A stretch of DNA of 64,000 nucleotides from assembly GCF_006345805.1 (NCBI RefSeq), contig NC_043014.1, positions 18,414,001 through 18,478,000 of the forward strand, given 5' to 3'. The position numbers and the translations under genes were made by a program. The stretch comes from Octopus sinensis. Lineage: Eukaryota. Below the pieces are notes generated by a model, which saw only the letters and a program-made list of their open reading frames with translations, ran no database searches and had not been told where the DNA came from. Every line of letters starts with the position of its first letter. The stretch's first letter is position 1. This document shows positions 2,433 to 54,536 of the stretch, piece after piece.

Positions 2433-2494
<62 letters not shown>

Positions 2495-2639
2495 TGCTTC
2501 AGCATGACTACAACCGCTTGGCTGAAACGACTAAAAGTGTATACACACACACACGTTATATTTACGTTATATTCATATAGGTGATAACGGAATTAGATTT
2601 TATAAAGATGTAAATATTGGGCCCACTCTTCTTTATAAT

Positions 2640-3131: not shown

Positions 3132-3136
3132 GCTAG

Positions 3137-3167
<31 letters not shown>

Positions 3168-3455
3168 ATGTGTGTACGTATGTTGTATAGATATGAATGT
3201 GTGTGTGCTCTGTTCACAGACACTCCCTCTCTCTCTCACTCGCTCATACACACACACACATAGCTATTGTAATGCAAACAGGAAACCTAGAACTGAAAAT
3301 ATGAGTAAATATATATTTTATTAATATTTAGTAGACGCAACTAAGTGAATCAAGTTCCAAGATTCTGGTGTCTGATAAGTGCTAACACACGAAATTCTCA
3401 TCACTTGAGTCCCTCTGTTGCTTCTGCTAAATATGGATATATATATATACATACA

Positions 3456-3497
<42 letters not shown>

Positions 3498-3776
3498 ACA
3501 TATATATATAACATTTATATGGCAGCATAAATATACTGATTCGTATACAATGTATACCCAAAAGTTTAAGAAGTCCGTTTCGCAATCCCAAGGCACGGAA
3601 TTCGATCTCACTGCATGGAATCTTCGGCAAACCATACTAATAGCCACAGCCTCCCAAGCCTTTCAAGTGAAATAGTGTTGATAGAAACTGCGTGGATTGC
3701 CGCTCTCTCTCTCTATCTATCTAGCTATCTGTCTGCCTGTGTGTTTACGTATTTGTTTATCCATGTGCCCTTCTCT

Positions 3777-3823
<47 letters not shown>

Positions 3824-3825
<2 letters not shown>

Positions 3826-3971
3826 CGCAGAAGTGGGTGTGTGGTAACTAGCTTGCTTACCAACCACATTGTCCCCGGTTCAGTCCCACTGCGTGGTACC
3901 TTGAGCCTCGGGTCGATCAAAGCCTTGTGAGTGGATTTGGTAGAAGGAAACTGAAAGAAGCCCAACGTGTG

Positions 3972-4024
<53 letters not shown>

Positions 4025-4207
4025 CCCCATTACCGCTTGACAACCGATGTTGGTGTGTTTACGTTCCCTTAACTAGCGGTTCGGCGAAAGAGACCAATAC
4101 AATAAGTACTAGGCGTACAAAGAATAAGTCCTGGGGTCAATTTGTTCGTCCAAAGATGGTGCTCCAGCGTGGCCGCAGTCAAATGACTGAAACGAATAAA
4201 AGAATAT
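3824..4207 (+). mobile_element. Near full-length CORE-SINE; empty target variant AACTAGCTTGCT at 3846-3857
   Basis: GGCGCAG head, A-box-like TGGGTGTGTGG, B-box-like GGTTCAGTCCC, internal (TA)(TG) array and 3' GGCCGCAGTCAAATGACTGAAAC tail shared with other copies. Confidence 0.9.
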
Positions 4208-4250
4208 AGACATATATTTATGTGTGTTTGTGTGTGTGTGTGTGTGTGTG

Positions 4251-4305
<55 letters not shown>

Positions 4306-4897
4306 TGCGCGTGCGTATGGAAACTTTTAAATTGAATTTTACCTCTAATTGAGATGTCTAGGCTTGTCACATAATGTGTCACGCTGATTCGGCCTCAGGA
4401 TTAACGAAGGGGAAACATGTTTGCGGAATGCTCAGCCACTTAAAACCGAGTTTAAAATCGAATTCCATACACATCGTGGAAGGCGCCAGAAATCTTTTAA
4501 ACATACATGTGTGTATTTGTGCGTAGGTTTCTCTGTCTTTGTCTGTGCGACCGTGTGTATGTGCGTTTGTGAGTGAGTGAATATGTTTGTATGCAATGTC
4601 TCACATATTGATACACCTCATAATCAAAAATCAATCGTTGTAATATTAATTTCATAAAACGTGTTTCAGTTCACCCTAATACAATTCCTCGCTTTGTCTA
4701 TAATAAAATATTAATTAATTACTAAATTAATTAATTCATTCATTAGAATAATTAATTAAATATTAATACAATATAGAGAAATAATAAAAGAAAAGCTATG
4801 GACTAGATTAATATCAATTATTCTGTTTCCTCCAACAACTACCACTGTACCTCTTGCTACTTCATCTATTATAGTTATTCATACAACTACACTTTGA

Positions 4898-4914
4898 ACA
4901 GAACAACAACAACA

Positions 4915-4948
<34 letters not shown>

Positions 4949-4950
4949 TA

Positions 4951-4982
<32 letters not shown>

Positions 4983-4984
4983 TG

Positions 4985-5046
<62 letters not shown>

Positions 5047-5050
5047 TCTG

Positions 5051-5104
<54 letters not shown>

Positions 5105-5330
5105 AGCTACTAATGCTGCTGCTACTGCTACTGCTTCTGCTGTTATTGTTGTTACTGCCGTTACAGCTTGAAACTTATAACTTAAAGGAACGTAATAAAA
5201 TATTGAAAGATATTTCTCGTCATATATAACGATAATAACCACCACCACCACGACCACCACTACCAACAACAACCACAGCAGCAGCAACAACAACAACAAC
5301 AACAAACGCAACAACAAAAGCAGCAGCAAG
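4898..5330. repeat. Compound trinucleotide array (CAA/CTA/CTG/CCA)
   Basis: Directly visible; source of the poly-L/T/V/A ORFs. Confidence 0.95.
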
Positions 5331-5903
5331 CATATGGACATAGGGACAAAGAATTAATCACATAATCTCTGGTTGCCCAATAACACCCACAGACATGACA
5401 GAGTTGGAACTTACACACGCTGGACTTTATCTCGCCATTATGAAATGCTAACTCGAAAAAGATGGTTTTGGCATACATCGGAAAATGCCTCCTGGAATAC
5501 GAAGCAACCATACTCTGATAGATACTAATATACACACAGGCAGATCAGGACTAACCGAGCGGCTACTGCGCTGGAAGATCATAAGGAAAAGATATGCCTC
5601 CTATGAAACAGATGGAGAAATTACTCAAATGTGAAGATCTGGACATAAAGAAAACCTGAATATGAAGCCTGACAACAGAAATAAACCTTATAATAATAAA
5701 TGCTTTGAAAATGATCAACACATGAAGATAAATACATCACGACAACCCAAGGACATAAATATGCGTAACATGCAGAAAATAGAACTGCTAGATACGGCAT
5801 ACATACTATGAAAGGTGCAGGCAATACAATGAACATAAAACCAAAGGAAACATTGTTTATATATATATATATCGCTTGTAATGCAATTAAATCATTGCAA
5901 TCA

Positions 5904-6658
5904 GGCAATGGCTCTCATGGCTTCTGATCTTAACTGATTGGAAGTGTTATCATATACATGTTTCGTCTTGGTATAAAAGATGGGCTACAGCAGTGGTTCC
6001 CAAACTATGAGTCGTGGCCCACAGATGGGTCGTGAACGGAATCTTAGTGGGTCGCAAAAAGTTATAAAATTACGCATTAGCTTTGATTAACTGCTGTCTA
6101 TCGAGATGGTTCAAGGCTTATAAGTGGGTCATCATAATCCGGTGTGATAAACAGTGGGTTGCGACTCTAAAAAGTTTGGGAACCACTGAGCTACAGCAAA
6201 TATTCTGCTCAATGCCACAGATTTGTTTGTCAGTTACTTGACCATAACCAGTCGAGTGTGTCTCTTGGTGGCTGACGATGTCTACACCTATGGTCACGTG
6301 GAGTAGTAGTTGGAGAGCATCATAGCCATGTGTTGAGAGGAATTCCTTGGGGTTTGAATAATTTACCTCTGGAAACATGGGTGTTTCGTTCAACATCCTT
6401 AAACAACCCTTATCCTGAAACCTTTTGAGCAGGATGGGTTATTCGACCTGAAGAAAATTCTAACAAGTTTCCACCTGCAAGGTAATGCGCTGTTTACCTT
6501 GTTATGTGATCACTATGTCGCGCACATATGGTTCTGATGCATGTGCTTGGTGCACCGTTATCAGACGGTTATCATGATGGGTGTATTGGGCTTCATATGT
6601 TTGTACTCCAGTGTCACTTTGGTGCAAGCATTGCTCTCTCACTCAATAATAACAATAA
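5904..6658 (+). mobile_element. Interspersed repeat with (AAT)n-like 3' tail (probable non-LTR 3' end or long SINE), interrupted by a MITE
   Basis: Sequence reads continuously across the MITE (GGGCTACAG|CAAATATTCTG) and ends ACTCAATAATAACAATAA. The family is recalled from octopod DNA, not verified by search. Confidence 0.5.
5991..6188. mobile_element. hAT-superfamily MITE, 198 bp
   Basis: Perfect 16-bp TIRs CAGTGGTTCCCAAACT / AGTTTGGGAACCACTG; 8-bp TSD GGCTACAG (5983-5990) / AGCTACAG (6189-6196). Confidence 0.92.
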
Positions 6659-7929
6659 AGCAATATTACTAATCAATAATGTCTTAAACGAAGATTGAAA
6701 GAAGAGAATATGTGTCTGAGATAGGTATACAACCACCACCAGAAGGGCTTTGCCATACTTCCTCAGTTGTGGATCTTTGTAACTTTAACTATGAGTAAAG
6801 TATCGCAGCTAATATAAATGCATGAAGCGTATTTTGGGAAAATTGCAAACAATTTTGCAGTTATTGTCAAATGAAGTTTATCTTTAAGACTAAATCCATC
6901 TCCATTCTAGGAAGAATATTCCAAGGGTGGGGTCACTTTTCTTTCTGGTGCGACATATTAAAGAGGACTGCATTCAGGTGCAAACATTACGTTAAGGCAA
7001 CCAAGCGTCTTTGGTAAATGGACTTCCACTAGTTGTACGTTAGAACAATATTGGAGACTAGTATATAGTTTTACTAAACAAATGTAAATGAAATTCAGAT
7101 CGTGTCTAGGCAAACTTAAGGCGATGAAAATTAATCAAAAGTATTATCATGCAAGATAAAATCATTCAACTATTAGAATATCAACAAACACGAGATATAA
7201 ATACTTAAAAGTACAATCACAGAACTTATTCAAATGCAAGAAATGTTTAGGAAGCAACGCTATAAAAGTATTAAGTTAATACTTGAATAAGAACTAAACG
7301 AAAACGTAAGGTAATGTTCAGCAATAATCTAGATGTCTAGATGTCCCAGTAATTACATATTGGTATAATGTTCGTAGTCGGAAGTAGCTAAACAAAATGG
7401 GAGAAAAGCGAGGAAAATACTGACCGAATCTAAAGTACACCATTCAATATCTAACCTAGAAATATTTACCACGAAACATATTTATCAAAAAACGAGGAGA
7501 TAGGGATCTTATACAACGAGAAATCTAAGAAGTACAACACTACCATGTGAATAATAATGGAAAACTAATAGATATATTATAACTAGGAAACATGAACAAA
7601 ATAAAACAAAAGTAGGCTTACTTTCTTCAGAAATGAGAGATTGTTGTAAAGAAAGAGGAAACATCAACAGAAACTATAAAGAGAAAATGTGAAATAAAAT
7701 TGGGGAGAAAATACTAATATAAAACGATGGCATGAAAGGACCAACATTTCAAATACCTGAAAATGTAAACTGGTTGAACTGGAGATAGAAAATTCACAAG
7801 ACTGACTGAATGATTTTAGATTATTGTCTAGTATCAAAGCTGCCCCGAAAGCCATGAAAAGCCTGTAGTGTATCAGAAATACGGTAACTGAGTGCAGAAT
7901 GTTTGGATATGGCTAAAAAGAAATAAATA

Positions 7930-9174
7930 TAGGATCATCCCATGAATAATGCGGCTTTTTCAATTGCATGAACTACAAGTCGGAGGGGAACGGGATAAAC
8001 TACCTCCATCAACTTGCTATACAAGCAGGTAGTAATTCTGCCTTGCCTTATTCGTAGCGCAAGTTTTGAAGAGTGCAGTTCGATTTTAACAGTTAGTTTT
8101 TCAAAGCTATAGTGGAGGTGACAAAGGAGCATATTCGGCATATTTTGCTTTATGAGCTCAATAAAAGCAACAACGCAAAGGAAAGTGCGAGGAATATTAA
8201 TGGGGACTGGGACAATAAGTGTAAGCTAATGTCAACGGTGGTTCCAGAAATTCTGAGCTGGAAATTACAGCTTAGAAGACGAACCCCGTCCTGGAAATCT
8301 GTAGGGCTCGACGAGGACGTCCTGCAAATACTGGTGGAACAAAATCACATCATAGCTGTTAAGGGACTTGCAGAGAAGCTTAGATTTGGTCATTCAACCA
8401 TTCATCCACACATGCGTGCCATCGAAAATGTCATTGAATTGGGTCAATGGGTCCCTCACAAACTTCCCGAACCTAATCGCGCGCAGAGAGTGAATGTGTG
8501 CTCTTTTATGCAGCTACATCTCAGGAATGAACCTTTTTTGGTCCGAATAGTGACTGGTGACGAGAAAAGGGTTTTCTATAATGATGTCAGGGACCGAAGA
8601 CAGTGAGTAAGGAAAGGAGAAACACCGACATCCCAGGCTAAAGAGCGACCTTCACCCACATAAGGTGTTGTTATCTCTTTGGTGGAATATAAAAGGTTTA
8701 GTCCACTTTGAACTTTTTAACCAAAACCAAACGAACGATAGCAAAGGAGATTTACCCCGAGCGAGAAGTTTGAGCGTCTTAAGTCAGGGTTAGAAGCAAA
8801 ACGACCATTTTTGGTTTCAAGACGACAGCGAGGATGACATTCCAAAGGCTGGAACAGTTTGAATGGTAAACGATGCCCACCCACTATATTCACTAGACAT
8901 TGCCCCCTCTGATTATCATTTATTCTGCAGTCTTCAAAATCATTTGAACGGGAAAAATATGAATTCTGTAGACGAGGTCAGAAGAATACGAGAGGAGTAT
9001 TTTTCGTCATGGACAAGTGAATTTTAGGGGCCTTGCAAGTCTACCAGATAGATGGAAGAACAATGTAAAAAAATGAAGGAGAGTATATTTTAGATTAAAA
9101 ATGAACTTTCTTTATCTTAATTTTGAAAAACAAAAGAAGTATAAAAAAACCGCATTATTTATGGGATGACCCAA
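7930..9174 (+). mobile_element. Full-length decayed mariner transposon (1245 bp)
   Basis: 31-bp TIRs matching at 27/31 (TAGGATCATCCCATGAATAATGCGG / TTGGGTCATCCCATAAATAATGCGG), TA on both flanks. The transposase pseudogene from 8112 has WVPHKL, IVTGDEK and YSLDIAPSDYHLF motifs; frameshifts and stops. Confidence 0.95.
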
Positions 9175-10303
9175 TACAATGTTTTTGTTGCCTAGTCATG
9201 CCTGGCATGACAAATTTTGTGCTTACATACTGCCAGCATTATGAAAAACCAACTGAAGACAGATGGTATAGGCACACACCGGAAATGATCTCTGTGAATG
9301 TCAAAGCGACCGTACTTTGAGATACAGAGAAATCATCAAAATTAGTCGAGCGATTATTGTTATCAAATGCCAGAGGACAGAAATTGCCTCTTAATCTAAG
9401 TACCACTCACAACGTATTGTATATCCCTTTCTAAAAAATTTGGAAATTATCCGAATAAAACACCAAGAAAAAGAGATAATTCGAATACGGTGGATACAAA
9501 CAGAAACAATCCCTATAATCATAATTGAGAATGACAAACAATGCACTTAAATACTTAACCATAGCTTCGAAAATATACATAATATACAGAAAATAATGCT
9601 ACTAGAAACTGCGTATGTATTACATAACGTTTTTCCAATACAAAGGAACAACCAAACTGTGTCCGGGTTCTGATGCAAAATATAAAAAAATAAAAAATTA
9701 AACAAACAACAGATTATGAATCGTTGATAATATTCAAAGCAAAAAGATAAAATGGATGTTATTACAATCACCTCCAGTTGAATCACAATAGTATCAGCGG
9801 ATATATGACTACAACAACCATTGAGATGAGTCATAAACAACCGACTCTAATTCGTGTCATTAAAAACACTTTTGGATAGAAGAAAGAAAGCGGATTCTGC
9901 CACTCGAACCCACACCTCCTATAGATATGACAGGCGTTCTTACCCAATATTTACACACTATTATTTGTAACTTAATGTACTTCAAAATCCAGTTCTAAAA
10001 ATGGATGAAACATACACGCACACACATACATGTATACATACATACATACATACATACATACATGCATATATGCATGCATACATACATACATACATACATA
10101 CATGCATATATGCATGAATACATACAAACACAGTCTCTCTCTCACGCACACACAAAAACATATACGTATATCGATCTACATATAGATATATATACAGATA
10201 TACATATAAAACCTCCTATTTTATTATGCCGTCTAATAAAAAAGGAGCTTTTATATGCGTATTCAAAGACGTACCCCATGAGCTTGAAGGACACATACAC
10301 GTG

Positions 10304-10334
<31 letters not shown>

Positions 10335-10339
10335 TTATA

Positions 10340-10382
<43 letters not shown>

Positions 10383-10393
10383 ATACACGCACG

Positions 10394-10452
<59 letters not shown>

Positions 10453-11179
10453 GTTAAAGACTTGTTTTATTTATATTTCCTGAGCGCCATACTAATACAA
10501 TTGTTCGTTTGTTTTCCACCTGCCTTCGTCTTTTGTTTATTTTCATAAAGCTTCCCGTTATATATATATATACGTGTGTGTATGTGTGCGAGAGAGAGAG
10601 AGAGGAGAGAGAGATGGAGTGAGATTAAAAAGAGAGAGAGGGAGAGAGAGGGAGAGAGAAAGAGAGACAGACAGACAGACAGAGAGCGTCTTTGTATTTG
10701 TTAAGGTGTATACTTGTATGGTTATATGCGTCTGTGTATTCGCTCCTCGTTGCTCTCAGTTCAAATCCCACCGGGGTCAAAATCCCGGTCTACAAAAACA
10801 AAAAAATGCATCAATCTAGTGTTGCGAATCGGCACAGCTGCTAAAGCTTCAGAAACGATGCTTTGCAATATCTTATCCGGCTGCATCAATGGCATCCCGA
10901 TATGTCAGCCTTTTGAGTTACTGTTAAATATCACTGGTTGAAGGGTGGCTTAACAAGAAAAATTGAATGCAAAAACAAAGGGATCACCGCACTCCTTTAG
11001 CTGTTGTAAGCCCAGTAAATGACAGTTAATCTGGTCATTCTGTTCGTTTCTCTGTATTTGTCATCGGCTTACGTCGGCTGAAAAAAAGTGGTGATCATGG
11101 TGTCATTGAGACGGAAAGTTAAAGTCCTGTACGTGAGTCTCGGTAACTTTACCATTCAATTAATACAGTCCTAAATAAA

Positions 11180-11430
11180 TATGCATGTGAATGTGGCAGT
11201 GTCTAAGGAGTGTAGCAGTGGTGGTGAAGGTGAAAAAAGCATTTTTATACCCCTTAATCCCATTCACATAAGATGATTTCAGTGTATTCCTCTATGCGTT
11301 TTATTAAACACAACTACAATCAGATTTTCAACGACATTCAGGTCTCCTTCCTTTATCATCACATGCAGTTTGTCTAAAGTGTGGGTGAATTCATGTACAT
11401 TCTCTTCGCTCATCCGCTATGATACTGCTT
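11180..11430 (-). pseudogene. Possible decayed LINE APE-endonuclease fragment
   Basis: Minus frame RMSEENVHEFTHTLDKLHVMIKEGDLNVV loosely resembles the APE 'EEIDEFY...GD(L/F)NA' segment. Confidence 0.3.
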
Positions 11431-11698
11431 TTGTCGCCATAAAAGTCATTAATGGCTAATTGTTCTTCGGGTAATGTTTTTTATTTATATGATAAATTCC
11501 ACTTCATTTTAACTCCTGTCTTAAAACTTACAGAAGATTTGAAGTGAAATGTCTAAGTGTTCGCTATATTTACATATTGTAACACGCCGAAATAAACTCA
11601 TCCCCAAACAACCGTTTGGTCGATCGTACCTTCAAATCGCTACTTCTGAGGACGCGAATGGAATATAAGGTTATAATCACATATCTCCATATAGTTTA

Positions 11699-12015
11699 TG
11701 GATTCCATGAACAGCGGGGCTCACCAATGGAGAAATCCGGATCAAGCCGGAACTGTCGCTAGAAGCTAGGATCACCAAGCATAGATTGACATATTTTGGT
11801 CATATTATGCGGAGAAAATTCCTGGAGAAAGACATCATGCTTGGAATGGTCAGTGGCAAGAGAGGAAGAGGCCGACCAAGAACCCGCTGACTTGACACCA
11901 TCAAGAGTGACACGGGAATGGACAATCTGAAAGAAGCGACCCAGGATAGAACTGGGTGGAGGACACTGATCCATCGAGTAACCGAGAGGCGACTTCGACT
12001 GAGCGGATAGATAGA
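11699..12015 (+). pseudogene. RTE (BovB-like) LINE 3' end
   Basis: Translates IKPELSLEARITKHRLTYFGHIMRRKFLEKDIMLGMVSGKRGRGRPRTR*LDTIK...QDRTGWRTLIHRVT, the typical RTE-BovB C-terminus. Confidence 0.88.
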
Positions 12016-12305
12016 GAGACATAATGTTGTATGGATTGCATAAGATTGTATGGAATAAAAATATAGTCCGTTTATGGGAACAATTTTAATGTCAATTTGA
12101 TTTCTCCTTTCCACATTTAAAATATTTTGCTAACTCTGGGGGCTTATATTAAGCCTACTGGATTTTACCTTGGAGTAGTTTTTTAGTCCTGCCTTTCATA
12201 TCAATCAAAGTATTACAGATCTCCTTTAATTTTGGAATACTACGTTAGCCAGATCCTGCAGGATGTGCATATGAGGCTAGAGTGAGGATTATAGTTATAC
12301 CCTTC

Positions 12306-12443
<138 letters not shown>

Positions 12444-12573
12444 GTACATAAACAAATGGAACCGACGTTACACGTTTTACAGTTTTGTGGGTAGAACTAT
12501 TGAAAGTCTGTGAAGTGATCTCGTGACCACGTGTCTCCTGCGCAGAGTCCAGGTTCTACTGCTGTTGCTGCAG

Positions 12574-12614
<41 letters not shown>

Positions 12615-12673
12615 GAAAAATAAGATATATGTGAATGGGTAGTATGTCAGCTGTTGCACCGTTTAGATCTTAC

Positions 12674-12725
12674 CGATTCGGACATCCGCCAGCCGCCATT
12701 TTAGCAATCAATTAATAGCGGTTAT
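12674..12725 (-). CDS. Candidate host-gene exon (52 nt) carrying a start codon at 12699 (MAAGGCPN, phase 2)
   Basis: Strong acceptor TTTTTTCAATTCCTCTGTTTCCTTTCAG, donor TCG|GTAAGA, AAAATGGCGGC (Kozak/YY1-type) start with an upstream in-frame stop, locally CpG-rich and non-repetitive. Confidence 0.5.
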
Positions 12726-13249
12726 CTGAAAGGAAACAGAGGAATTGAAAAAAATAAAATAAAATAAAAAATACATGAAAAAAAATCTGTGAAAACAAAT
12801 GTAAACTAACAACACAAAATACATAAATGAATAAATGAATTAATGAATGAGCGAATGAGTGAATGAAGAACTTAAAAGAAAAAAATGTTTTGTCTGTGAT
12901 TGTATATATTAATATGGCAGCGTGTATGGATTGTGGAGATGGTGAAACAAGAAGTATTCTTTTATCCCCATTGATGCCGTTCACGTACGATTATTGCAGT
13001 GTACACATCAATGCGCTTTACTAAGCAGATTGCTCAATTCTCATATTCTCTTTCTGTCTCTCTTTCCTTTAACTTTTTCTGTCTTTATGCCAGTCATTCG
13101 TTCTGTTTTACTTCTCGTCCTCTTCGCACCTCTTCCACATATTATTCATTCTTACCTCCTTCCTTTGTTCCCTTTTTTCTTTCCTTCTTTCATTTTCTCA
13201 CTCGTTCCATTTGTTTTCGCCATTCTTCAATTCTCGTCGTTGGCTTCTT

Positions 13250-13321
13250 CTCTTGTGGCTTTTCTTTCTTTCTATCTATCTTTCTATTTTTCTTTCTTTC
13301 TTCCTTTCTTTATTTCTTTGT

Positions 13322-13361
<40 letters not shown>

Positions 13362-13462
13362 TGTTCTTTCTTTCTATTTTTCTTTCTTCTTCCTTCCCTC
13401 CTTTCTTCTTTCTCTTTCCTTCCTTCCTTTCTTTCTTTCTTTCTTCCTTCCGTCCTTCCTTC

Positions 13463-13494
<32 letters not shown>

Positions 13495-13570
13495 TTTCTC
13501 ACATCCATTCATTCTTTCTTGGTCTGTTTCGTTTGGTATATTATCCTATTCGTTTCTTTTCTTTCTTCTT
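13250..13570. repeat. (TTTC/TTCC)n pyrimidine-rich low-complexity tract
   Basis: Directly visible; source of the F/S/L-rich ORFs. Confidence 0.95.
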
Positions 13571-13926
13571 TCTTGCTAAACGAAATTAATTCAGAGACAC
13601 TCTAGTCAATAACAGCGATAGGTATATAGTTAGATTAGGATAAACGAAAGCACGCGCGCACACGAGAGAGAGAGAAAGAGAGAGAGAGAGATAGTGAGAG
13701 AGAGAGGGGGGAAGAGAGATGAAGAAAAAAGCAATCAAGAAAGAGTGAGAAAAACGTACACAGAAAACATATAAGAGCATGCTCACAAACTTATATTGAC
13801 AACCTTAGTTACGTGCATGTACAATTCATCACATACACACACACATAAAAACATCCTCCCCTCTCGCCCTGTCGTCATATCTTGCTTACATTAAACATCT
13901 TAATAGTTTGCTCTCTTTCTCCCTCC

Positions 13927-13965
<39 letters not shown>

Positions 13966-14384
13966 TCTCTCCTTGTCTTGCTCTTTTTCACTCTTTCGCG
14001 CACGCAGTGAATAGAACACATCTAAAGGACACAAACACAGAACACACAATCGCTTATACTCAGTGTACGCTTAGCATATATACACATCCATCATAATTCA
14101 TACACAGCGCGTGCGCACACACACTCATGCACATGTACACACACATACACACATATGCACAAACTCACACATACACACACTCAGTTCTCTTACATACACA
14201 AACGTTTACACAAACGTAGCCTGCAGAGGCATACGGAGCTCATTCACATATACATATACACACAAGCTTAGAGGAAGAAGAAGAGACTGGAGTGTGTGGG
14301 AGGGGGGTGCGAACTGTAGAAAAGGTTGATGAGGGTTTTGAACCAGAAACAAATGGAGTTGACCATAAGTAGGATAACAAAAGA

Positions 14385-14459
14385 ACGACAATGATGATGA
14401 TGATGGTGATGAGGATGGTGATAATAATAATAATAATAATGATAATAATAATAATAATG

Positions 14460-14510
<51 letters not shown>
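14385..14510. repeat. (GAT)/(AAT)n array
   Basis: Directly visible. Confidence 0.95.
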
Positions 14511-14511
<1 letters not shown>

Positions 14512-14728
14512 CCACGAATTAAAAGAAACATTGTAAAAAGAGGAAAGAAAAAGAATAAAAGGAATAAAGAAAGCAACAGGAAGCCACTTAGTTACCGAGA
14601 TAACAACAAAGATCGAATGAAAGGCCGAATTCCATCCCCTTCCTAACAATAAAACTAAAGAAATACAGAAAAATATGCAATATAATATAATATAATATAA
14701 TATAATATAATATAGCATAATATAGTAT

Positions 14729-14759
<31 letters not shown>

Positions 14760-15169
14760 ACGCACACACACATATATGTGTGTCTATATATAAGAATATA
14801 GTTATATAAACCTGTGTAATTATCTCCAAAGATCACTTTAGACTGAACAACAAAAACTGGAAGCAACAATTCAGTATAAAAATGAATAATAATTTGCAGA
14901 CAAGTAGCGTCTGTTTTATTCAAATGTCTGCCATCTTTGTTCGTTATTCTTTTTGGCTACTTCTTTCGTCTGTGGTCTTCTGATTTTTTCCCTCGTCAGC
15001 CTTTCTTGCTGTCGTCGTCATTGATTTCTTCATTTAGTCTGCCAAGACACGGAATTAAGGGTCAAAAGAATTTGGCAGCGGATGAAAAGAACTCCGAAAT
15101 AAGCAACAATCACAACAAATAAACTATTAGAACAAAACAGACGATTTCAACAAAACTTGTATTTATCCA

Positions 15170-15790
15170 TACATGACGTGTATTTCAAAAGTTTTGAGCC
15201 CAGTATACTTTCTGAGAAATAATAGTAGCAAATGAATACATATATTTTAATATATCTTTCACCACCATTAATTTGAATATCATTTTCACATCGCTTGTTC
15301 AGTTACTGAATGACATATAAAAAGAACTTTTTATCTTCCACAGCGTGCCTCTGTTGTGTGACCAACTAAAATTCTGCACTGCTGTAGAATTGTCTGACCT
15401 TCAAATGATACTTCACATGTAGGAATATATTGGAGTAACTACATATGGAATGGGTAGTTGAAATAAATCTTCAAAACCGAATTCACTACTGGCAGTCTTT
15501 GACTCCTGAACCGGGTGTTCTTGCGTATTGTTGTAAAGAAGCAGAACATTAGCACTCAACATTCCACGAATCTTTGTCTTGATATAACCATACAGCTGCC
15601 GCAATGAAGCAGCATAATCGGCACCTATGATTGTGGTCCTGTGCAACTTGTATTCTATTAACAAAACGCATTTAGTTGCAGAGAATTGTCTCTGATCTGG
15701 AATGAGCTTAGAATTTCTTGGGAAATAGAAATTCTTTATGATTCTACTACCTAGAAATTTCTTTGGTCTCGGGTTTAATGTAGAGTATGC
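15170..15790 (-). pseudogene. Mariner transposase C-terminal remnant
   Basis: TIIGADYAASLRQLYGYIKTKIRGMLSANVLLLYNNTQEH...EFGFEDL matches the mariner YY..LL..L...I..KR.G.L...VLLLHDNA..H region. Confidence 0.8.
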
Positions 15791-17224
15791 ACACATTATC
15801 TCCGGGAATGATTCGAGACTTGAGCAGAAGTAGGAACTTTAGATTTTATAGAGAACATCACACCATGATATCTTGTATATACGGAATTTAAACAGGCAAA
15901 CACTTTTGATATGTTGAAATGTTTATGAAAACAGATCTTTATACAAGTACTACTGGTACAGAGTTGAAAGGGAATGGAATACGTACAGTATGATTTATGA
16001 TACATTTTTCGCAACCTCTAGTTTCATGGCTAGTAACATAATGAAATAATAAGATGGTAAACACAATCATGTCCCCGAAAAGATAAAGGACAATATGAAA
16101 AAGAAATTCCGGTGTTGCATGTTTCGTTATAAATATTTTGAGGGTACAGCTACATATTTTCTACGAATTGTAAAAATTTTTGACTTTTTTAAAACATCCA
16201 TCGTGCTTATTCGACATATCATGGTGAATGTAATCCTCGATCAAGACGCGTATGAGCCGCCCCATTCTGAGCATCTCATTAGATCAATAAAACAATAAGG
16301 ACCCAATAGCTAACTCAGTAATTACATGAACAATTGGCTTACTTTTCTCTCTATAATTGAGTATTGTTCCCACTAAGAATGTTGCGAGTGCGAATGTTTT
16401 GACAATGTGGTTGACATTTTCTCCCGCGTCAATTTTAATAAATGGGTGACCCCTTTACAATTGCTTTTCACGTTACTATGTTCAGTTACACTTGATGGCT
16501 TTTTTCCAGACATCTTGATTTGTAGCTAAATTCAACAGTGGTGTTTATCAACAATTTTCCACAACAAAGATGTTGTGGGGAAAGAACACAAAAAGTGTTT
16601 TGTAAGAGCAAATTACTGTGATATTATTTCTATGAATATAACAATGGAAATGAGCTGAAAGGATAAAGGAATGAGGTGGGAGAACATACTACGTTGTTTT
16701 TGTTAGTTGGAGCATTATCAGGTTCATAGAGATTTCGGTTCTTGCACGCCTAACTTGAACCATAAAATTTCCATATTCTAGACTCATAGGTATGTTGACA
16801 TAGAACATATGTTGCTACAGACAATGTTATCATGCTGATACAATTATTGTTTCCAGTTGATAATGCGAAAGTTGTTCGGTTAATTGTGGTGATGGTTGTA
16901 TTGGTTTTGGCGTTAGGAATGATGGTGAAATTAATATAGATGGCGAGGTTATATATTTCTTGTTTATTTGTATTGTTGTTACAATTTAGTCTCAAGTCAA
17001 TTCTCGTTGATCGATTATCAAAGACATCCCATTCAACTCTTGAAATACTTTAGGTACCATCTTTTATTTTAGATGGAATTTGGTGTCATTTTCATAGTAT
17101 TATTGTTGGTTGTATTTGTTCTGATGATAAATAGTGGCAGTAAAGGCTGGTTTACGTATATATATATATATATATTATATATATATATATATATACATAC
17201 ATACACACATCCCGATTATAAATT

Positions 17225-23174: not shown

Positions 23175-23885
23175 CCGATGACGACAGAGTCTGTGTTCTC
23201 GGCGATGAGAGCACATGTATCTCCGAAGTCCAAGCCTGGAAGCACACAGACGCCCACAGATGTCACAACGATAGTCTCATTAATGGACTGAAGCAGATGC
23301 TGCTCTGTGACGCCTTACTCTTGCAGCATTGTGGACGCTGTCTCTGGTCCTGTATTAAGGCAGCTGCTGCTCATGTGGTGTGAGACTCCCACGCTGATAA
23401 TTCTGCGGCAGAGGCTTCGAATTCGGGTGGGTTAATGCCGCTCGGTTTCGGAGTGTCATTGTATTTCAGTTTAGGTCTTCTTCGTTTGCGTGAGCCCTGC
23501 GTGAGCTCGCCGTACAACAGCTGTTGTCAGTCACACACAGTAGTCAGTCATTCTAATGATATGGCCAGTCCAGCGTAACTGATCCTTCAGCAGGATTGAC
23601 TCAATGATTATTGAACAAGTTCCGATCAGCATTTCTTGGTTTGTCACACTGTCCTGCCATCGAATGCCCATCTTCCTACGAAGTGTCCTTGTTTGAAACT
23701 GTTCCAGGTGTTTGATGCGCCGACGGTATTTGGTCCATGATTGACATCCATAGAATACTGTAGATCTTGAGCTTTGTCGATAGTTTGATGCCTTTCTGCT
23801 GCAGGACTTGCACTTCCAGTTTTCCAAATGCTTGACTGGCCTTGTGGATTATGGATAAAATTTCGCTGTCCAATGATCAATCGGC
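23175..23885 (-). pseudogene. RTE-type LINE 3' fragment with a C-terminal C2H2-like finger
   Basis: KASQAFGKL..VLQQKGIKLSTKLKIY / YGCQSWT.YRRRIKHLEQFQTRTLRRKMGIRWQDSVTN / QLRWTGHIIRM; CDICGRLCASRLGLRRYMCSH at 23205-23267. Confidence 0.88.
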
Positions 23886-23935: not shown

Positions 23936-24190
23936 TATTCTTTTACTTGTTTCAGTTATTTGACCGCGGCCATGCTGGAGCACATCGACCCTAGGACTTA
24001 TTCTTTGTAAGCCTAGTTCTTATTCTGTCGGTCTTTTATGCCGAACCGCTGAGTATGGGGACGTAAATACACCAGCATCAGTTGTCAAGCGATGGTTGTA
24101 GTGGTAGGGAAACAGACACGCAAATATATACATATATAAAGCTAAAATTTGCCCTGTTTATATATTATACCATATATGTATATATATATC

Positions 24191-24226
<36 letters not shown>

Positions 24227-24353
24227 ACGCGCTTCTTTCATTTTCGTCTACCAAATCCACTCACAAGTCTTTGGTCGGCCCAGAAGACATTTGCCCAAGG
24301 TGCCACGCAGTGCGACTGAACCCTGAAGCATGTGGATGGTAAGCAAGCTACTT
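23936..24353 (-). mobile_element. CORE-SINE, distal part (B box, core, tail) of a copy split by a 4-kb insertion
   Basis: Minus strand reads AAGTAGCTTGCTTACCATCCACATGCTTCAGGGTTCAGTCGCACTGCGTGGCACCTTGGGCAAATGTCTT... through the GGCCGCGGTCAAATAACTGAAACAAGTAAAA tail. Confidence 0.93.
24342..24353. repeat. Target-site duplication copy 1 (AGCAAGCTACTT)
   Basis: Identical to 28351-28362; one mismatch to 26374-26385. Confidence 0.93.
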
Positions 24354-24725
24354 TATTTCATAACATTTGCCATAAAGGCAGTACATAGAGTAAGTTAGCT
24401 TTGCGGGCTGGACGAGGACATTAATGAAATGAATGATGATGAAAGAAAGATGATGGGGATGGGAGAAGACAAAAAGCGCCCGCCGACTTATGCTTCTCTA
24501 AAACATTGTTCTTTTAAAAACAAACACAAAACGAGGTATAAAACCTCTTACAATTTTACAACTTTTCAATTTTTGGATTTAACAGTCCAATACTAACAAC
24601 AACATAATTCAATAGTTACATATGATATAAATACAATACACAAAGCCCCTCCTCCCAGACCTGGCTTACACTTCCCTTAGGAATGCGCCAGCTCTAGGTC
24701 GGGGCCTCTCAAATCGTATCACAAT

Positions 24726-25128
24726 TTATAACTCGTCCTCAAAATAACTTGTGCCCGCATCCTCCGCCATCCACCACGTCTCCCTCAGAATGTAATCGAG
24801 TTCCGTGTTAGCGTCGCCCGGGACCAAGCTATAATCCTCATTGAGCTCCTTCAGCCCAAGCGTCACGTCGAACGCCACGGCCTCCACAGCTACCAGCGGA
24901 GGCCATTCGGTGTCCTGTGTGAAGGCTGAAGGTGCTCCCTTGTGGTGCTTTTCCATCACCTTTTCAATCTCTCCGCCTCTATGGAAGAGGATCAATATAT
25001 CGTTTTTGCTCGGGTGCGGGATATTCAATTCTTTCGTTGGCGGCACAGTTCCCGCCAACGGTGTTTCTTCTCCTGTCGGTGGCACAACCCCAACCGACGT
25101 AGTTCCGGGACGTTCCGGTATTATGTCA
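24726..25128 (-). CDS. Copy A second ORF (ORF-X, ~130 open codons, +1 frame relative to ORF1, unknown function)
   Basis: Open to the TAA at 24726. ILILFHRGGEIEKVMEK and TQDTEWP align with YVVLYYKGGTLEKEIRK and TEDPEWP of copy B, with synonymous third-position differences. Confidence 0.6.
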
Positions 25129-25689
25129 CCGACTGCCGGTAATGTCTCGTTTCTCTTCCTCTTTTTCTTTTTTTCTTTTCAAAAAATCTGGAAGAACCAG
25201 ATTGGCTGATTGGGTCCAAAGGGTCAAAATTGCTTTTCACCCAACCCAAACAGCCGCAGGAAGAACTTTCACATCAAGGAGCTTAGTTTCGCTGCTACCC
25301 AGACCCCGGCGGATAGTCTCCTCTATCCACTCGGGTTTTATCCCGGGTGGCAGCCCACAGATCCAAGCTTTCGCCAGTCTCTTTTTTTGGTACGTGGGCA
25401 GGAATAAAATTTCCTTACCCTCCAGGGGTTTACTAGCAAATTTGCAAGCCTCTTCAGGGGTGTCAAATAGCAACCACACCGCTGCATATCTGACACCCCT
25501 GGAAATGAATTTAATTGTTGGCAAATACTCTGCCAACTCCTTTTCAATTGCCGTCTTTTCGAATAGGGTGATAGTGTCGAGTGCCTTGGAGTAGATTCTC
25601 AACACCACCGTCCTATCTTCACGGTCTTTTAACCACTTTTTAGGCGGTATAATCTCCCATTCCAAAATTTTGTTATTTTTCATTGCCAT
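25126..25689 (-). pseudogene. Copy A ORF1-like gene (RRM-like region; zinc knuckle deleted in frame; premature TGA at 25237-25239)
   Basis: MAMKNNK...AWICGLPPGIKPEWIEETIRRGL...G*KAILTLWTQSANLVLPDFLKRKKEKEEEKRDITGSR*; 87/140 residues identical to copy B by manual alignment. Confidence 0.8.
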
Positions 25690-26373
25690 GTTTTTTTGGT
25701 TTTTTAAAAATATATTCAAAATAAACTTAAAAAGCGAGAAGAAAAAAGTTCAAAAGTCCAAATAAAATTCAATAGATTTTTTGAAAAAACAATAAGGAGA
25801 AAGCACGACAGAAGGGAAGAAATCAACGGAAAGTCGCAATAAACAAAAAAAACAAAAAGGGGAGTTAAATGATGTTCAAAAGAAAGTTAATAAACAGCAA
25901 AACACAACAAAAATCTTCTGGCCTTACGGTACACCCGGCCTGAGTTGAACCTGGAACGCCGCAACTGGAACACAACCTCCACAAAAATTGGTCCAAAAGG
26001 TAATCCAAAAGTGGCTTATTCTTATAATTTTCTTGCGAGATACGCCCACAAGAAGAATTCTCACTTCACCGTTACGGCCAAAATTTAACACTATTTTCAA
26101 ACGAAAGTTTGGCAGGATACGCCCACCAAACCAATAATTTTCACAATTAAGTGAATATTTTCACTCAGCCTCAGGTAGGCCAGAGTCTAGTGAGGACTTC
26201 TTGCTTGTAAAAATAATTTGCAACATACAACAGGTCCCCTCTAGACCCCCAAAATTCTTACCTTACGGCTGAGTATTCAAAAGTCTTCAATTTAAGACGG
26301 CTTTCAACAGCACGTCTTACATTTACGGTGTCCAGCACCTCATTGACTTACGCATGCGTGGAAGCAACCTGTT

Positions 26374-26385
26374 AGCAAGTTACTT
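26374..26385. repeat. Target-site duplication copy 2 (AGCAAGTTACTT) at the A/B junction
   Basis: 11/12 match to the outer TSDs; preceded by GTT and followed by TATTTCA exactly as at the outer junctions. Confidence 0.88.
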
Positions 26386-26606
26386 TATTTCATATATAAT
26401 TTGCCACTAGGGCAGTACAGAGTAGCTGCGGGCTAGACAAAAGACATTAATGAATGATGGTGATGGGAGAAGACGAAAGCGCCCGCCGACTTCCGCTTCT
26501 CTAAGACATTGTTCTTTTTTTCAAAGATTTTACAAAAATTCCAAAATTTTACATATGTTATAAGAGGCAATAAACCTCCCTCTCAATACAAAAATGTTCA
26601 ATAGGT

Positions 26607-27068
26607 TTACGTTGCCCGGCCGACCAGCGCTTTTGCTTCACCGAGGCAATCGTTCTTCGTCAGGTTTTTATATACCGGTATAAATTGAAATGAGTCCTCC
26701 GGGAAGGAATACGCGATCCTGCACAGATCGTTATTGAGTAGGACCTCCGCAGCCAGCTGCGAAGGCCACTCCGGGTCCTCCGTGCAGGACCGAAGTCCCT
26801 CCCATTGGCCTCTCTTTCTCATTTTACGTATTTCCTTTTCTAATGTTCCTCCTTTGTAGTAGAGGACTACATATTGTTTCTCCGGCGGCACGCCCGCCGG
26901 AGGAGACCTGGGAGACGCCGTCTGCGTGTTACAATCCGCCGCCGGCGTCCCGTTTCTCTTCTTCCTTTTTCTTTTTACCTTGGGCCACGGGAGGTTGAGG
27001 TTCCGGTGTTGTACACACCGGGTCCTCTTTTTCTCCCGCAGCTTCCGGTTCTTTTGGTGGGTCGCCAT
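26607..27068 (-). CDS. Copy B second ORF (ORF-X, 153 aa from ATG, overlaps the ORF1 end in the +1 frame)
   Basis: Uninterrupted ORF with GAAATGG start context; C-terminal half homologous to copy A ORF-X. Confidence 0.6.
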   Translation of the reverse strand: MATHQKNRKLREKKRTRCVQHRNLNLPWPKVKRKRKKRNGTPAADCNTQTASPRSPPAGVPPEKQYVVLYYKGGTLEKEIRKMRKRGQWEGLRSCTEDPEWPSQLAAEVLLNNDLCRIAYSFPEDSFQFIPVYKNLTKNDCLGEAKALVGRAT

Positions 27069-27797
27069 TTCTCCCCACTTTTCTTTTTCTTTTTGTTGAG
27101 GAAGTCACCGCTTCCTCGCTTTGTTTCTCTCCCTCCATTGGGGGGGGCAGGGAGAGGCTCCAACATCAACTGCTCCAGGATCCTACTCTGGTCCCTGGGG
27201 CAGTTCGTCTTAATATGGCCGGTCTCCAGGCACAGGTGACACTTGGGGGGGGGGTCCCTCAAGCATCACCGGATACCTGTACCCGGCCATCCTCAAAAAG
27301 TCCGGTAAAACCAGGCTTTTGGCTGACTGGGTCCATAGGGTCAAAACAGCTTTTGACCCCTCCCAATCAGCCGCAGGCTGCACTTTTACGTTCAGTAGCT
27401 TGGAACTGCTACCATCTAAGCCCCGGCGGATAGAGTCCTCTATACACTCGGGGTCAATGCCTGGTGGTAATCCGCAGGTCCAAGCTCTCAACAGTTTTTC
27501 TCCCATATAATTGGGGAGAAACAATATTTCTTCGCCCTCGATAGGCTGGCTTGCAAATTTGCAAGCTGCTTTAGGGGAGTCAAATAGCAACCAAACCGTT
27601 GCGTATTTAACTCCCCGAGCGATATATTTAACGGCTGGCATCTAGTCTGCCAGCTCGTTTAAAATAGTAGCCTTTGGGAAGACTGCTATGGTGTCGAGCG
27701 ACTTCGAGTATGTCCTCAACACCACGGTCTTCCTTTCCAGCTCTTTGAAATATTTTTTGGGAGGTGTTAGGTCCCACACAATAGGTTCCTTTGCCAT
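26929..27797 (-). pseudogene. Copy B ORF1-like gene (Tx1/L1-type: RRM-like region, CX2CX4HX4C knuckle at 27200-27241, E/K/P-rich tail), ~288 aa when repaired
   Basis: MAKEPIVWDLTPPKK...ELAD*MPAVKY...EGPPP(fs)KCHLCLETGHIKTNCP...(fs)...KKKKEEEKRDAGGGL*. TAG at 27642-27644 and +1 slips in G10 (27245-27254) and G8 (27140-27147). Confidence 0.82.
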
Positions 27798-28350
27798 AAC
27801 GTAAAGTTCAAAAACAGTTCAAACAAAAATAAAATAGGTCACAAAAAGGAGAATGGAAAACACAACAGAAGGGAAGAAATGAAAATAGAAGTTCAAAAAA
27901 AGTTCTTTTTTTTAAAAATAACGATAGCTGGAAGAAGAGTTCAAATTCAGCAAAGGAATTAATTATTTTGGCCGAAAAGGTACTCCTGGCCAAACGTTCA
28001 ACAGTCTTTAGTGCTTCCTGGTAAATCCCAATGAAATCAGTCCTTGGTTGTCGTTAGTAATCTCCTCGAAAGCAAATCATTTTTGAGGAAGGGCTGCGCC
28101 TCCTCAAAAAACACAATTCTCACTGCAAAGTGAGTCTTTACACTCGACTACAGGCAGAAAAATTGTCCGGAGCAAAGTGTAGTCTATTACTTGCTAAAAA
28201 TATTAAATTCAAAGCAATAAACTTCACTAGGCCCCTAAATAAAATTCAACAAATGCCTACTTGTAGTCGAGTCTCAAAAGTTCAACATTTCACGTTGAAA
28301 CACGTGACAACTGGAGCAGCCAAAAAACACGTCTGAACACGTCAGAGGTT

Positions 28351-28384
28351 AGCAAGCTACTTACCACACAGCCACTCCGGCGCC
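28351..28384 (-). mobile_element. CORE-SINE head (A box) of the split copy, including TSD copy 3 (28351-28362)
   Basis: Minus strand GGCGCCGGAGTGGCTGTGTGGTAAGTAGCTTGCT matches the head of the intact copy at 29701 and continues seamlessly into 24341 downward once the insert is removed. Confidence 0.93.
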
Positions 28385-29625: not shown

Positions 29626-29700
29626 TATATATATACACATATGCATATATATATGTATGTATAGATATGTAAGTATGTATTTATACAGTTACAAACATAG

Positions 29701-29868
29701 GGGCAGGAGTGGCTGTGTGGTAAGTAGCTTGCTTACCAACCACATGGTTCCGGGTTCATTCCACTGCGTGGAACCTTGGGCAAGTGTCTTCTACTATTGC
29801 CTCGGGCCGACCAGAGCCTTGTGATTAGATTGGCAGACAGAAACTGAATGAAGCCTGTCATATATATG

Positions 29869-29945
<77 letters not shown>

Positions 29946-30152
29946 TTGTGTGTCTATGTTTGTCCCCCCCCAACATCGCTTGACAACCGATCGTGGTATG
30001 TTTACTTCCCCGTAAATTAGCGGTTCGGCAAAGAGACCGATAGAATAAGTACTAGGCTTTTAAAGAATAAATCCTGGTGTCAATTTGCTTGACTAAAGGC
30101 AGTGATCCAGCACGACCGCAGTCAAATCACTAAAACAAGTAAAAGAGAGTAA
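29701..30152 (+). mobile_element. Full-length CORE-SINE with an intact empty target AAGTAGCTTGCT (29722-29733)
   Basis: Head, A/B boxes, CCTTGGGCAAGTGTCTT core, internal TA/TG array, 3' tail. Confidence 0.93.
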
Positions 30153-36510: not shown

Positions 36511-37418
36511 ACCAATATTCAATTTATATCAAGATTTCTTGCCAATATAGAAAGAACCGGTTTCTGAACTAGATCCAAGGCTCCTTCATTGGAATTTCAA
36601 CATCAACAACATGGTATTTTTGTTTGTTTGTTTGTATGTATGTATGTATGTGCAGATTTGTATGTTTTATATATGCATTGTCATGCATATAGGTACACAT
36701 CTAGATGTGCTCTTATATATCTAAATAATAAACTTCTGGAAAGTTTTAAAGATTTTTCAGTTCCAGTGATAGATTGTATCTGTAGTCTTCGAATTAGCGT
36801 CCTCCTTTCTGGTTTTGAGAAAACTAATTTCTCAAGAATGGTATTCAGGCAGTGTGTTACATATCCCAGGGTCCCAATAATTACAGGTATAAACCTGAAC
36901 TTGTAATCTGGATAAAGTAACTGCAGATTTCTCAATAGTTCGGCATAGGTGTTCTCTTTTTCACTGTTCTTCAGCTTTATGTTAACATCCACTGGGCAGC
37001 TAATTTCCACAACTGTGCACAGTTTCTCTTCTCTATCCCAAATCATTATATCAGGTCTGTCGTGCTTACATTTTATTGAGGTCTTCATTGGTATATTCCA
37101 TCGGTATTCCTTTTCATTATGAGTATCTATGGCTTCTACCATATTGTGGGTTTTTATTTCTTCGTCTTCGGGATTATTCTTCCGACATATTTCATTATAG
37201 AGTATCCTAGCTACAAAGTTATGTTTCATCGGTAGATAATACCGTGATGACATTTTTGGACAACTGCTTATGAAGAGGGTGATATCTTCAGTATGAAGCC
37301 CACAAAGTCTTCATCGGTTGTCACACTTTACAGATTTTCCCGCATCTCTATCCTTTTTGTGCATCAGGTACTTGGTTGATATTTTCCGTTCCTTGATTGC
37401 AAACGCATACTCTTCAAG
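36511..37418 (-). mobile_element. 5'-truncated REL-endonuclease non-LTR retrotransposon (R4/Dong-like) with 3' UTR
   Basis: EEYAFAIKE..ISTKYL...KCDNR*RLCG..EDITLFISSCPKMSSRYYLP.KHNFVA (decayed CCHC), then RPDIMIWDREEKLCTVVEISCP (PD-(D/E)xK type); ORF 36681-37253. Confidence 0.88.
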
Positions 37419-53548: not shown

Positions 53549-54082
<534 letters not shown>

Positions 54083-54110
54083 ATATATATATATATATAA
54101 ATAAACTACG

Positions 54111-54498: not shown

Positions 54499-54501
<3 letters not shown>
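54111..54501 (+). mobile_element. CORE-SINE; target variant AAGTAGCATGCG, unoccupied
   Basis: A/B boxes, core, internal microsatellite and tail as in other copies. Confidence 0.92.

Positions 54502-54536
<35 letters not shown>

Follow-up and report, generated by a model that had tools for sequence, protein, structure and literature searches.

A probable reverse transcriptase-less retroelement family inserted at one position of a SINE head in Octopus sinensis: two subfamilies in tandem and their relatives

Among retrotransposons without long terminal repeats (non-LTR retrotransposons), members of the Tx1 clade, an L1-group lineage, are known for target specificity that extends to other transposons (PMC4494074, PMC4640811, PMC3747384). 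Tx1L inserts into the piggyBac element Tx1D, Keno into U2 small nuclear RNA (snRNA) genes, Tx1-Mar into Mariner-N4_AMi, and others into Harbinger, LTR elements or microsatellites (PMC4494074). A second relevant group is HAL1 (half-L1), which comprises non-autonomous derivatives of mammalian L1 that contain only the first open reading frame, ORF1 (PMC5753468). Here we analyse a stretch of 64,000 nucleotides of Octopus sinensis DNA (contig NC_043014.1, positions 18,414,001 to 18,478,000; hereafter the window), in which one probably tRNA-derived short interspersed element (SINE) on the minus strand is interrupted by two units of about 2 kb, B and then A. We propose, at a probability of roughly 0.75, that A and B represent two old subfamilies within a SINE-targeting non-LTR family that has neither reverse transcriptase (RT) nor endonuclease (EN) and is mobilised in trans.

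The insertion behaviour of these copies matches that of Tx1-clade site-specific long interspersed elements (LINEs) and their passengers (PMC4494074), and their coding layout matches the HAL1 type. The family shares with Tx1-clade LINEs a sequence-specific insertion, fixed in position and orientation, into a repeated target, transposons being among such targets, as well as targets occupied in tandem or nested fashion, 5' bases derived from the target, the lack of a poly(A) tail and an ORF1 with RRM and CCHC domains; besides, distant relatives of the A/B ORF1 sit in L1/Tx1-group LINEs. It differs from them in that the octopus copies target the tRNA-like head of a SINE and carry no ORF2 at all. 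As in HAL1, ORF1 is kept (in the octopus family under purifying selection, with dN/dS, the ratio of non-synonymous to synonymous divergence, at about 0.2), ORF2 is gone and the element was propagated as a family, with the same architecture in A, B and a further copy, D. HAL1 differs in that it lacks site specificity and relies on the relaxed, poly(A)-dependent machinery of L1; the A/B family has a fixed target, a specific and presumably structured 3' tail, and one more small ORF.

Three other systems are worth comparing. SINEU families, co-mobilised by Tx1-Mar (PMC4494074), are likewise non-autonomous and follow the target preference of a site-specific LINE, but they are short and non-coding with snRNA-derived heads, whereas A and B are 2 kb long and protein-coding. 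R1/R2-type elements of ribosomal DNA, for which target co-transcription and annealing of read-through RNA to the nicked target are discussed in PMC4494074, show the same precise junctions, 5' junction variants with duplicated upstream target and, in R1, a target-site duplication (TSD) of about 12-14 bp; they differ in clade and target, and no ribozyme was detected at A or B by Rfam. Dada DNA transposons and NeSL/LIN (PMC8869645, PMC4640811) also use tRNA-type sequence as a safe landing site, but these are DNA transposons or LINEs with a restriction-like endonuclease (RLE) in genuine tRNA genes, and A and B have no terminal inverted repeats (TIRs) or RLE and occupy a SINE head.

The split SINE and its two insertions

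Along the minus strand the order is SINE head, 12-mer, B, 12-mer, A, 12-mer and the rest of the SINE (Table 1). Rejoined through a single 12-mer, the two SINE parts are gapless across the junction and collinear with the four uninterrupted copies of the window. With at most one mismatch the 12-mer occurs six times in the window against 0.26 expected, and the three matches outside the array stand at the equivalent position of other SINE copies. Both units lie in the orientation of the SINE, and each occurs only once in the window. They are 71% identical in nucleotides over about 480 bp of ORF, and their 3' untranslated regions (UTRs) have in common a 66-bp block at 91% and the last 75 bp or so. 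The conserved 3' tail is about 170 nt long, with the family motifs ...AAGTCGGCGGGCGC...GTACTGCC...TGGCAAAT..TGAAATA, and the 5'UTR measures 0.55-0.7 kb.

An earlier note on this DNA, made from the sequence without database searches, had described the split SINE, the 12-mer at both outer junctions with a one-mismatch copy in the middle, and two units of 2020 and 1965 bp in SINE orientation; every coordinate holds. Its manual estimate of about 62% protein identity between the units (87/140) agrees with the 105/166, or 63%, that we compute for ORF1. One of its statements needs amendment. Each unit does begin with AAC and finish with TGAAATA, but AAC is not the canonical 5' end, as copies C and D (introduced below) start with TCC... 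and A has 11 extra bases before TCCAC. The 5'UTRs of A and B are only about 45% identical and essentially unalignable.

The host SINE is about 470 bp long, has A-box- and B-box-like motifs, and is present in five copies within the 64 kb, with further ones around copy D. Its CCTTGGGCAAGT...AGCCTC block resembles the MIR core. An octopus CORE-SINE, OR2, is documented (PMC4758252), and 11.6% of the O. vulgaris genome is SINE sequence (PMC13282606). Unoccupied SINE copies with an intact or near-intact 12-mer were seen in the window at 3846-3857, 29722-29733 and 55040-55051 and, around copy D (locus L002), at about 5856, 7565 and 12883; the insertions occupy just a small fraction of the potential SINE sites.

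Table 1. Coordinates of the split SINE, the inserted units and related copies (window positions unless a locus, L001 or L002, is named).
Feature	Position	Strand	Basis or remark
Host SINE head, 5' part, GGCGCCGGAGTGGCTGTGTGGT, with A-box-like GTGGCTGTGTGG	28363..28384	-	aligned to heads of 4 intact window SINEs; upstream of insertion site
TSD copy 1, AAGTAGCTTGCT	28351..28362	-	sequence match
Element B, 1965 bp: 5'UTR, degenerate ORF1, C-terminal ORF, 3'UTR, no RT/EN	26386..28350	-	ORF reading, A/B comparison
B ORF1 region, two RRM-like domains; in-frame TAG 27642-27644; frame lost in C10 run near 27250	27210..27797	-	fold inferred from model of homologue P0001
B CCHC zinc knuckle CHLCLETGHIKTNC, now frame-shifted	27200..27241	-	Pfam zf-CCHC E = 0.035 (sub-threshold); family profile matches PDB CCHC knuckles
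B C-terminal ORF, 153 aa, fold unassigned, +1 frame relative to ORF1 end	26607..27068	-	no homologues found; AlphaFold2 pLDDT 51
B conserved 3' tail, presumed recognition element for a partner RT	26386..26522	-	91% block and terminus in common with A
TSD copy 2, AAGTAACTTGCT, 1 mismatch	26374..26385	-	junction common to B and A
Element A, 2020 bp, B-like layout but CCHC region deleted	24354..26373	-	ORF reading, A/B comparison
A first 11 nt, AACAGGTTGCT, degenerate extra copy of target 12-mer before TCCAC	26363..26373	-	5' ends of A, C and D compared
A ORF1, 150 aa from ATG to TGA, two RRM-like domains	25237..25689	-	ORF reading
A C-terminal ORF, 119 aa from GTG, frame open further upstream; 28% identical to that of B	24726..25085	-	ORF reading
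A conserved 3' tail	24354..24525	-	A/B comparison
TSD copy 3, AAGTAGCTTGCT	24342..24353	-	sequence match
Host SINE remainder: TACCATCCAC..., B-box-like GGTTCAGTCGC, CORE-like block, internal microsatellite, tail	23936..24341	-	alignment to intact copies
Uninterrupted SINE copies	about 29682-30146, 3786-4241, 54070-54547	+	alignment
Uninterrupted SINE copy	about 55110-54646	-	alignment
Copy C, Octopus sinensis CM016886	L001 9487-~10975		starts right after ...GGCTGAGGCATGGCTGTGTGGTAAGTAGCTTGCT (junction ...GTGTGGTAAGTAGCTTGCT)
Copy D, Octopus sinensis CM016865	L002 15738-~17680		starts right after ...GGCGCAGGCGTTGCCGTGTGGTAAGAAGTTTGCT (junction ...GTGTGGTAAGAAGTTTGCT)
Sequence predicted after element 3' ends if insertion is site-specific			AAGTAGCTTGCTTACC

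Target site, subfamilies and the ORF1 protein

Besides A and B, two family members were retrieved, C and D, both from Octopus sinensis. Each abuts a complete SINE head that ends at the same 12-mer, in the same orientation, and they lie on different chromosomes with unrelated upstream flanks; the heads start precisely where the SINE itself starts, and they diverge as independent SINE copies do. All four readable 5' junctions (A, B, C, D) and both readable 3' junctions (A, B) fall at one SINE nucleotide, which bears out the expectation of the earlier note that other copies would have non-random flanks. Given that SINEs form 11.6% of the O. vulgaris genome and that the SINE is about 470 bp long, we calculate the chance of a given SINE nucleotide and orientation as ~1e-4 per insertion, and as ~1e-12 for three further hits. 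The family targets one position in the head of an abundant octopus SINE in one orientation, and leaves a TSD there. Scans of a metagenome collection with a protein pattern and with the 3' junction GAAATAAAGTAGCTTGCTTACC gave no match, octopus DNA being evidently not in that collection. Copy C breaks off into a CA/TA-rich stretch (L001, about 10975), and D breaks 8 bp past its stop (L002, about 17680); later rearrangement may account for the loss of their 3' parts.

Nucleotide identity in ORF1 is 84% for A and D, 77% for A and C and for C and D, and 70-72% between B and the others. A thus stands nearer to its counterparts elsewhere in the genome, D and C, than to its neighbour B, so A and B did not arise by local duplication; sequence comparison shows independent insertions of two old subfamilies, as had been claimed from the window alone. 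Between subfamilies dN/dS of ORF1 is 0.17-0.28, with synonymous divergence (dS) up to 1.26, which means that the protein was kept functional while the lineages diverged; for A and D the ratio is 0.58, as a result of neutral decay after insertion.

The family shows the features of non-LTR elements that move by target-primed reverse transcription: neither LTRs nor TIRs were found at A or B, the four copies vary in their 5' ends, A and B have a common 3' end, and a 12-bp TSD flanks the insertions. No RT or EN was found in A, B or D by Pfam and by reading of all frames, and the family can therefore be only a non-autonomous member of this class. The order of ORF1, C-terminal ORF, stop and non-coding sequence is common to A, B and D. 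Since it is found across subfamilies, this RT-less layout predates the subfamily split, and the proposal of an RT-less family made in the earlier note stands. We also considered a DNA transposon, and rejected it because there are no TIRs.

In A, B and D a short K/E-rich end of ORF1 is followed by the C-terminal ORF, which has about 120-150 codons and lies in the +1 frame. In these regions (24726-25190 and 26607-27140 of the window, about 17250-17675 of L002) the ORF overlaps a K/E-rich, A/G-rich tract, which could mean either that an overlap or a frameshift arrangement has been conserved, or that slippage occurred repeatedly. A word-indexed search with the ORF of B gave no homologue, comparison with the C-terminal portions of ORF1 in the relatives showed no similarity, and the AlphaFold2 model of the ORF (pLDDT 51) was too poor for a structure search. 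In the 3' tail only one compensatory pair was found between two sequences, and we do not count it as evidence of structure.

An exhaustive profile search of 1.84 billion representatives returned one close, one partial close and about 40 distant matches to ORF1, the last at roughly 25% identity. Ten of the matches, traced to their sources, came from entries with Octopus names (six), UniRef/MetaClust (one) and Logan run assemblies only (three); every relative with a species name is from Octopus. Word-indexed protein searches with the A ORF1 found nothing, and with the broad profile A4 they found only P0001 and P0035, distant members having swamped the candidate list. P0001, a 281-aa 'uncharacterized protein' of Octopus sinensis, matched with E = 8e-94; its AlphaFold2 model, built from the family alignment, has a mean pLDDT of 78, above 90 for most of residues 11-180, and folds into two beta-alpha-beta-beta-alpha-beta domains. 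The best PDB matches of this model by Foldseek are the tandem-RRM proteins NONO/SFPQ, hnRNP A1 UP1, Npl3 and Hrp1. Pfam gave only a sub-threshold zf-CCHC match for the ORF pieces and none for P0001, and together with comparison of the family profile with PDB it places a CCHC knuckle after the RRMs in B, C and D; A has lost it. By these results ORF1 consists of two RRM-like domains and a CCHC knuckle, as is typical for ORF1 of the Tx1 clade.

A LINE ORF2 lies downstream of ORF1 in the three distant relatives whose following sequence was read. In a Logan contig (L003) the next ORF begins with MSICLGCLNVKGLRS... (ORF2 start CLGCLNVKGLRS); in O. vulgaris (L010) it is an ORF2 of 1132 aa that contains the domains Exo_endo_phos, RVT_1 and zf-RVT and has human L1 ORF2p as its best PDB match (E = 2e-71); and L011 has a similar LINE ORF2. 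An origin of ORF1 as LTR-element Gag was rejected, in line with the earlier note: LTRs are missing, only the CCHC resembles nucleocapsid, the RRM-like domains come in tandem, and the relatives stand upstream of an ORF2 with apurinic endonuclease-like (APE), RT and zf-RVT domains. No SINE head or family sequence was found near the loci of two further distant relatives, P0009 and P0003.

Tandem arrays are typical of site-specific LINEs. At L010 (OX597840.1, about 2440-17026) at least three head-to-tail units of a full-length L1/Tx1-group LINE, with a period of ~5.27 kb, are 99.4% identical, each with ORF1 P0004 and an APE-RT-zf-RVT ORF2, and their junctions read ...GGGTAAATAAAATAAAACAC(TGATA/CCGAT) followed directly by AGGACGTTAC. 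At L011 (O. sinensis CM016872.1, about 7790-7860) an (ATT)n run stands directly before the LINE that carries ORF1 P0013, which may be a microsatellite-targeting relative.

Proposed mobilisation and alternative readings

We infer the partner, the nick chemistry and the read-through as follows. An autonomous L1/Tx1-group LINE would supply ORF2p in trans. The target is a palindromic, anticodon-stem-like GTGGTAAG-TAGC-TTGCTTACCAAC. Each of its strands presents CTT^ACC, with about 12-13 bp between the two sites, so that a single sequence-specific APE endonuclease could be enough for the two staggered nicks. This spacing agrees with the observed stagger; the TSD is of 12 bp, possibly 13 bp, and a 13-bp duplication would fit the junctions of C and D, as T is the first base of the element. 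Reverse transcription would be primed at the bottom-strand nick, on an RNA extended by read-through into the target downstream. The canonical AATAAA signal is completed only across the junction of element and target (...GAAATA joined to AAGTAG), both in A (24354-24360 with 24350-24353) and in B (26386-26392 with 26382-26385); transcripts made in situ should therefore be polyadenylated within the downstream target, and the resulting RNA 3' end could anneal to the nicked target.

Transcripts would also start in the upstream target sequence, which would explain why A and C begin with degenerate copies of the 12-mer. D has the canonical TCCAC directly after the target, A has AACAGGTTGCT before TCCAC, with a 9/12 match to the 12-mer, and C has a 16-nt start-like fragment and ATTAGTTGCT before it. 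It would be reasonable to regard the extra bases of A as a signature of 5' read-through, and those of A and C together as marks expected if the source copies sat in this site and were transcribed from the upstream target. Each 12-mer keeps one native SINE flank after the first insertion, so a second subfamily could land there, and such a second landing would give the array TSD-B-TSD-A-TSD.

Some features of the locus would also suit another history, in which one insertion with its TSD was duplicated locally and the copies diverged in place: A and B are adjacent, similar in length, of one orientation and common in layout. We consider this practically untenable, and reject it, since the ORF1 of A has 84% identity with that of D and 77% with that of C, against only 70% with that of B, and since A and B have a dS of 1.26 and essentially unalignable 5'UTRs (45%), yet the three 12-mers differ at 1/36 positions. 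The nearest relative of A being elsewhere and the 12-mers being nearly identical, duplication in situ is ruled out. A more serious objection is that A, B and D could be dead copies of autonomous SINE-targeting LINEs, each of which lost ORF2 separately, so that no self-propagating RT-less family ever existed. All copies are indeed degenerate, old LINE copies are often internally deleted, and A has a private deletion of the CCHC region; but three copies from two lineages (dS ~1) have the same ORF1, +1 C-terminal ORF and 3'UTR without any remnant of RT or EN, and breakpoints of independent deletions would not coincide, which makes this explanation an unlikely one.

The SINE head could also be a part of the element's own transcript, through 5' transduction or capture as in some Tx1-Mar and SINEU, the copies then inserting anywhere. 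C and D do consist of head and element with no SINE body downstream, A and C carry extra target-like 5' bases, and Tx1 families with target-derived heads are documented (PMC4494074). Nevertheless no head stands before A, just the 12-mer; behind A the 12-mer leads in register into the remainder of the same SINE, and the 3' end of B likewise runs into the 12-mer; the heads in front of C and D have the exact 5' end of the SINE and vary like independent SINE copies, and RNA polymerase III transcription from the head would stop at T-runs seen in the 5'UTR. We find this possibility very improbable. The identity of the partner leaves somewhat more room for argument: a site-specific, trans-mobilised family could depend on another APE-type clade, R1 or other, rather than on Tx1, given that the family has no RT, that its ORF1 is related to L1-group LINEs only distantly, and that ORF1s with RRM and CCHC are not exclusive to Tx1. 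Against this, every relative whose downstream sequence was read has an L1-group ORF2 with zf-RVT, and no R1-like LINE is among the recently active O. vulgaris superfamilies listed, where L1-Tx1 is the sole one of the L1 group (PMC13282606). Such a partner is doubtful, though it deserves to be kept in mind, and the label 'Tx1-like' seems reasonable but indirect.

The interpretation that we prefer, of two old subfamilies of an RT/EN-less and trans-mobilised family aimed at the SINE head, has to be held against several observations that weigh on the other side. Only four copies are known to us, with the 3' junction readable just in A and B, and the 10-29 kb downstream of C and D contained neither their 3' tails nor the bodies of their SINEs. 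We found no autonomous element that has this 3' tail or this target, the tail being unmatched in about 170 kb of octopus DNA, and the link of ORF1 to L1/Tx1-group LINEs is one of ~25% identity, with profile E values of 1e-10 to 1e-3. Neither Rfam (E <= 1) nor ARAGORN gave a tRNA or ribozyme model in the region, so co-transcription and RNA processing are read solely from the junction sequences. The C-terminal ORF may not be a real domain. All copies are degenerate, A by one in-frame stop and the private CCHC-region deletion and B by one stop and frame shifts in C10 (about 27250) and C8 (about 27150) runs, and because of this the activity of the family is historical. The frame shifts of B, being in long C homopolymers, could be errors of sequencing or assembly rather than mutations.

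We may even suggest, tentatively and at low confidence, that the family was a long-lived obligate hyperparasite, which would have existed without RT and EN over dS > 1 with its RNA-binding protein under selection, used the anticodon-stem-like SINE palindrome as a safe harbour, needed the target both for a poly(A) signal and for priming, and employed the C-terminal ORF as a new adaptor recruiting foreign ORF2p or the target.

Neighbouring observations and significance

Two other, transposon-like ORF fragments of the window deserve mention. An RT C-terminal-like ORF fragment adjoins the 3' end of the host SINE (23531-23880, minus strand), and a 190-aa ORF at 36681-37253, also on the minus strand, has a ...RPDIMIWD...EISCP... 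motif reminiscent of RLE-type LINEs; Pfam gave no match for either. Among annotated proteins, RefSeq XP_029652367-9 (LOC115225585) represent ORF1 of copy C. In an O. sinensis gene model (P0002; XP_029639579.1, 'K02A2.6-like', L002 10001-36638) residues 83-129, a 47-aa stretch of the ORF1 start, come from this family and are spliced to an rve-integrase fragment ~20 kb away; the model looks like an annotation chimera. At least two O. sinensis 'uncharacterized protein' RefSeq models are thus explained as transposon ORF1s, one of them chimeric.

That Tx1-clade elements target other transposons is already known (PMC4494074). In the searchable literature, Repbase and Dfam aside, we found no SINE head described as a specific target, no site-specific ORF1-only family, and neither of these in cephalopods. 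Site-specific LINEs serve as models for the choice of safe sites and as starting points for programmable RNA-templated insertion, and the palindromic target described here suggests a simple route by which one endonuclease makes both nicks. If our interpretation is true, targeting of a single SINE nucleotide adds a new class of target, which, with SINEs at about 12% of the octopus genome, would offer hundreds of thousands of near-identical sites. It would also make this family a clear case of a selected, protein-coding, RT-less element that depends on the enzymes of another element.

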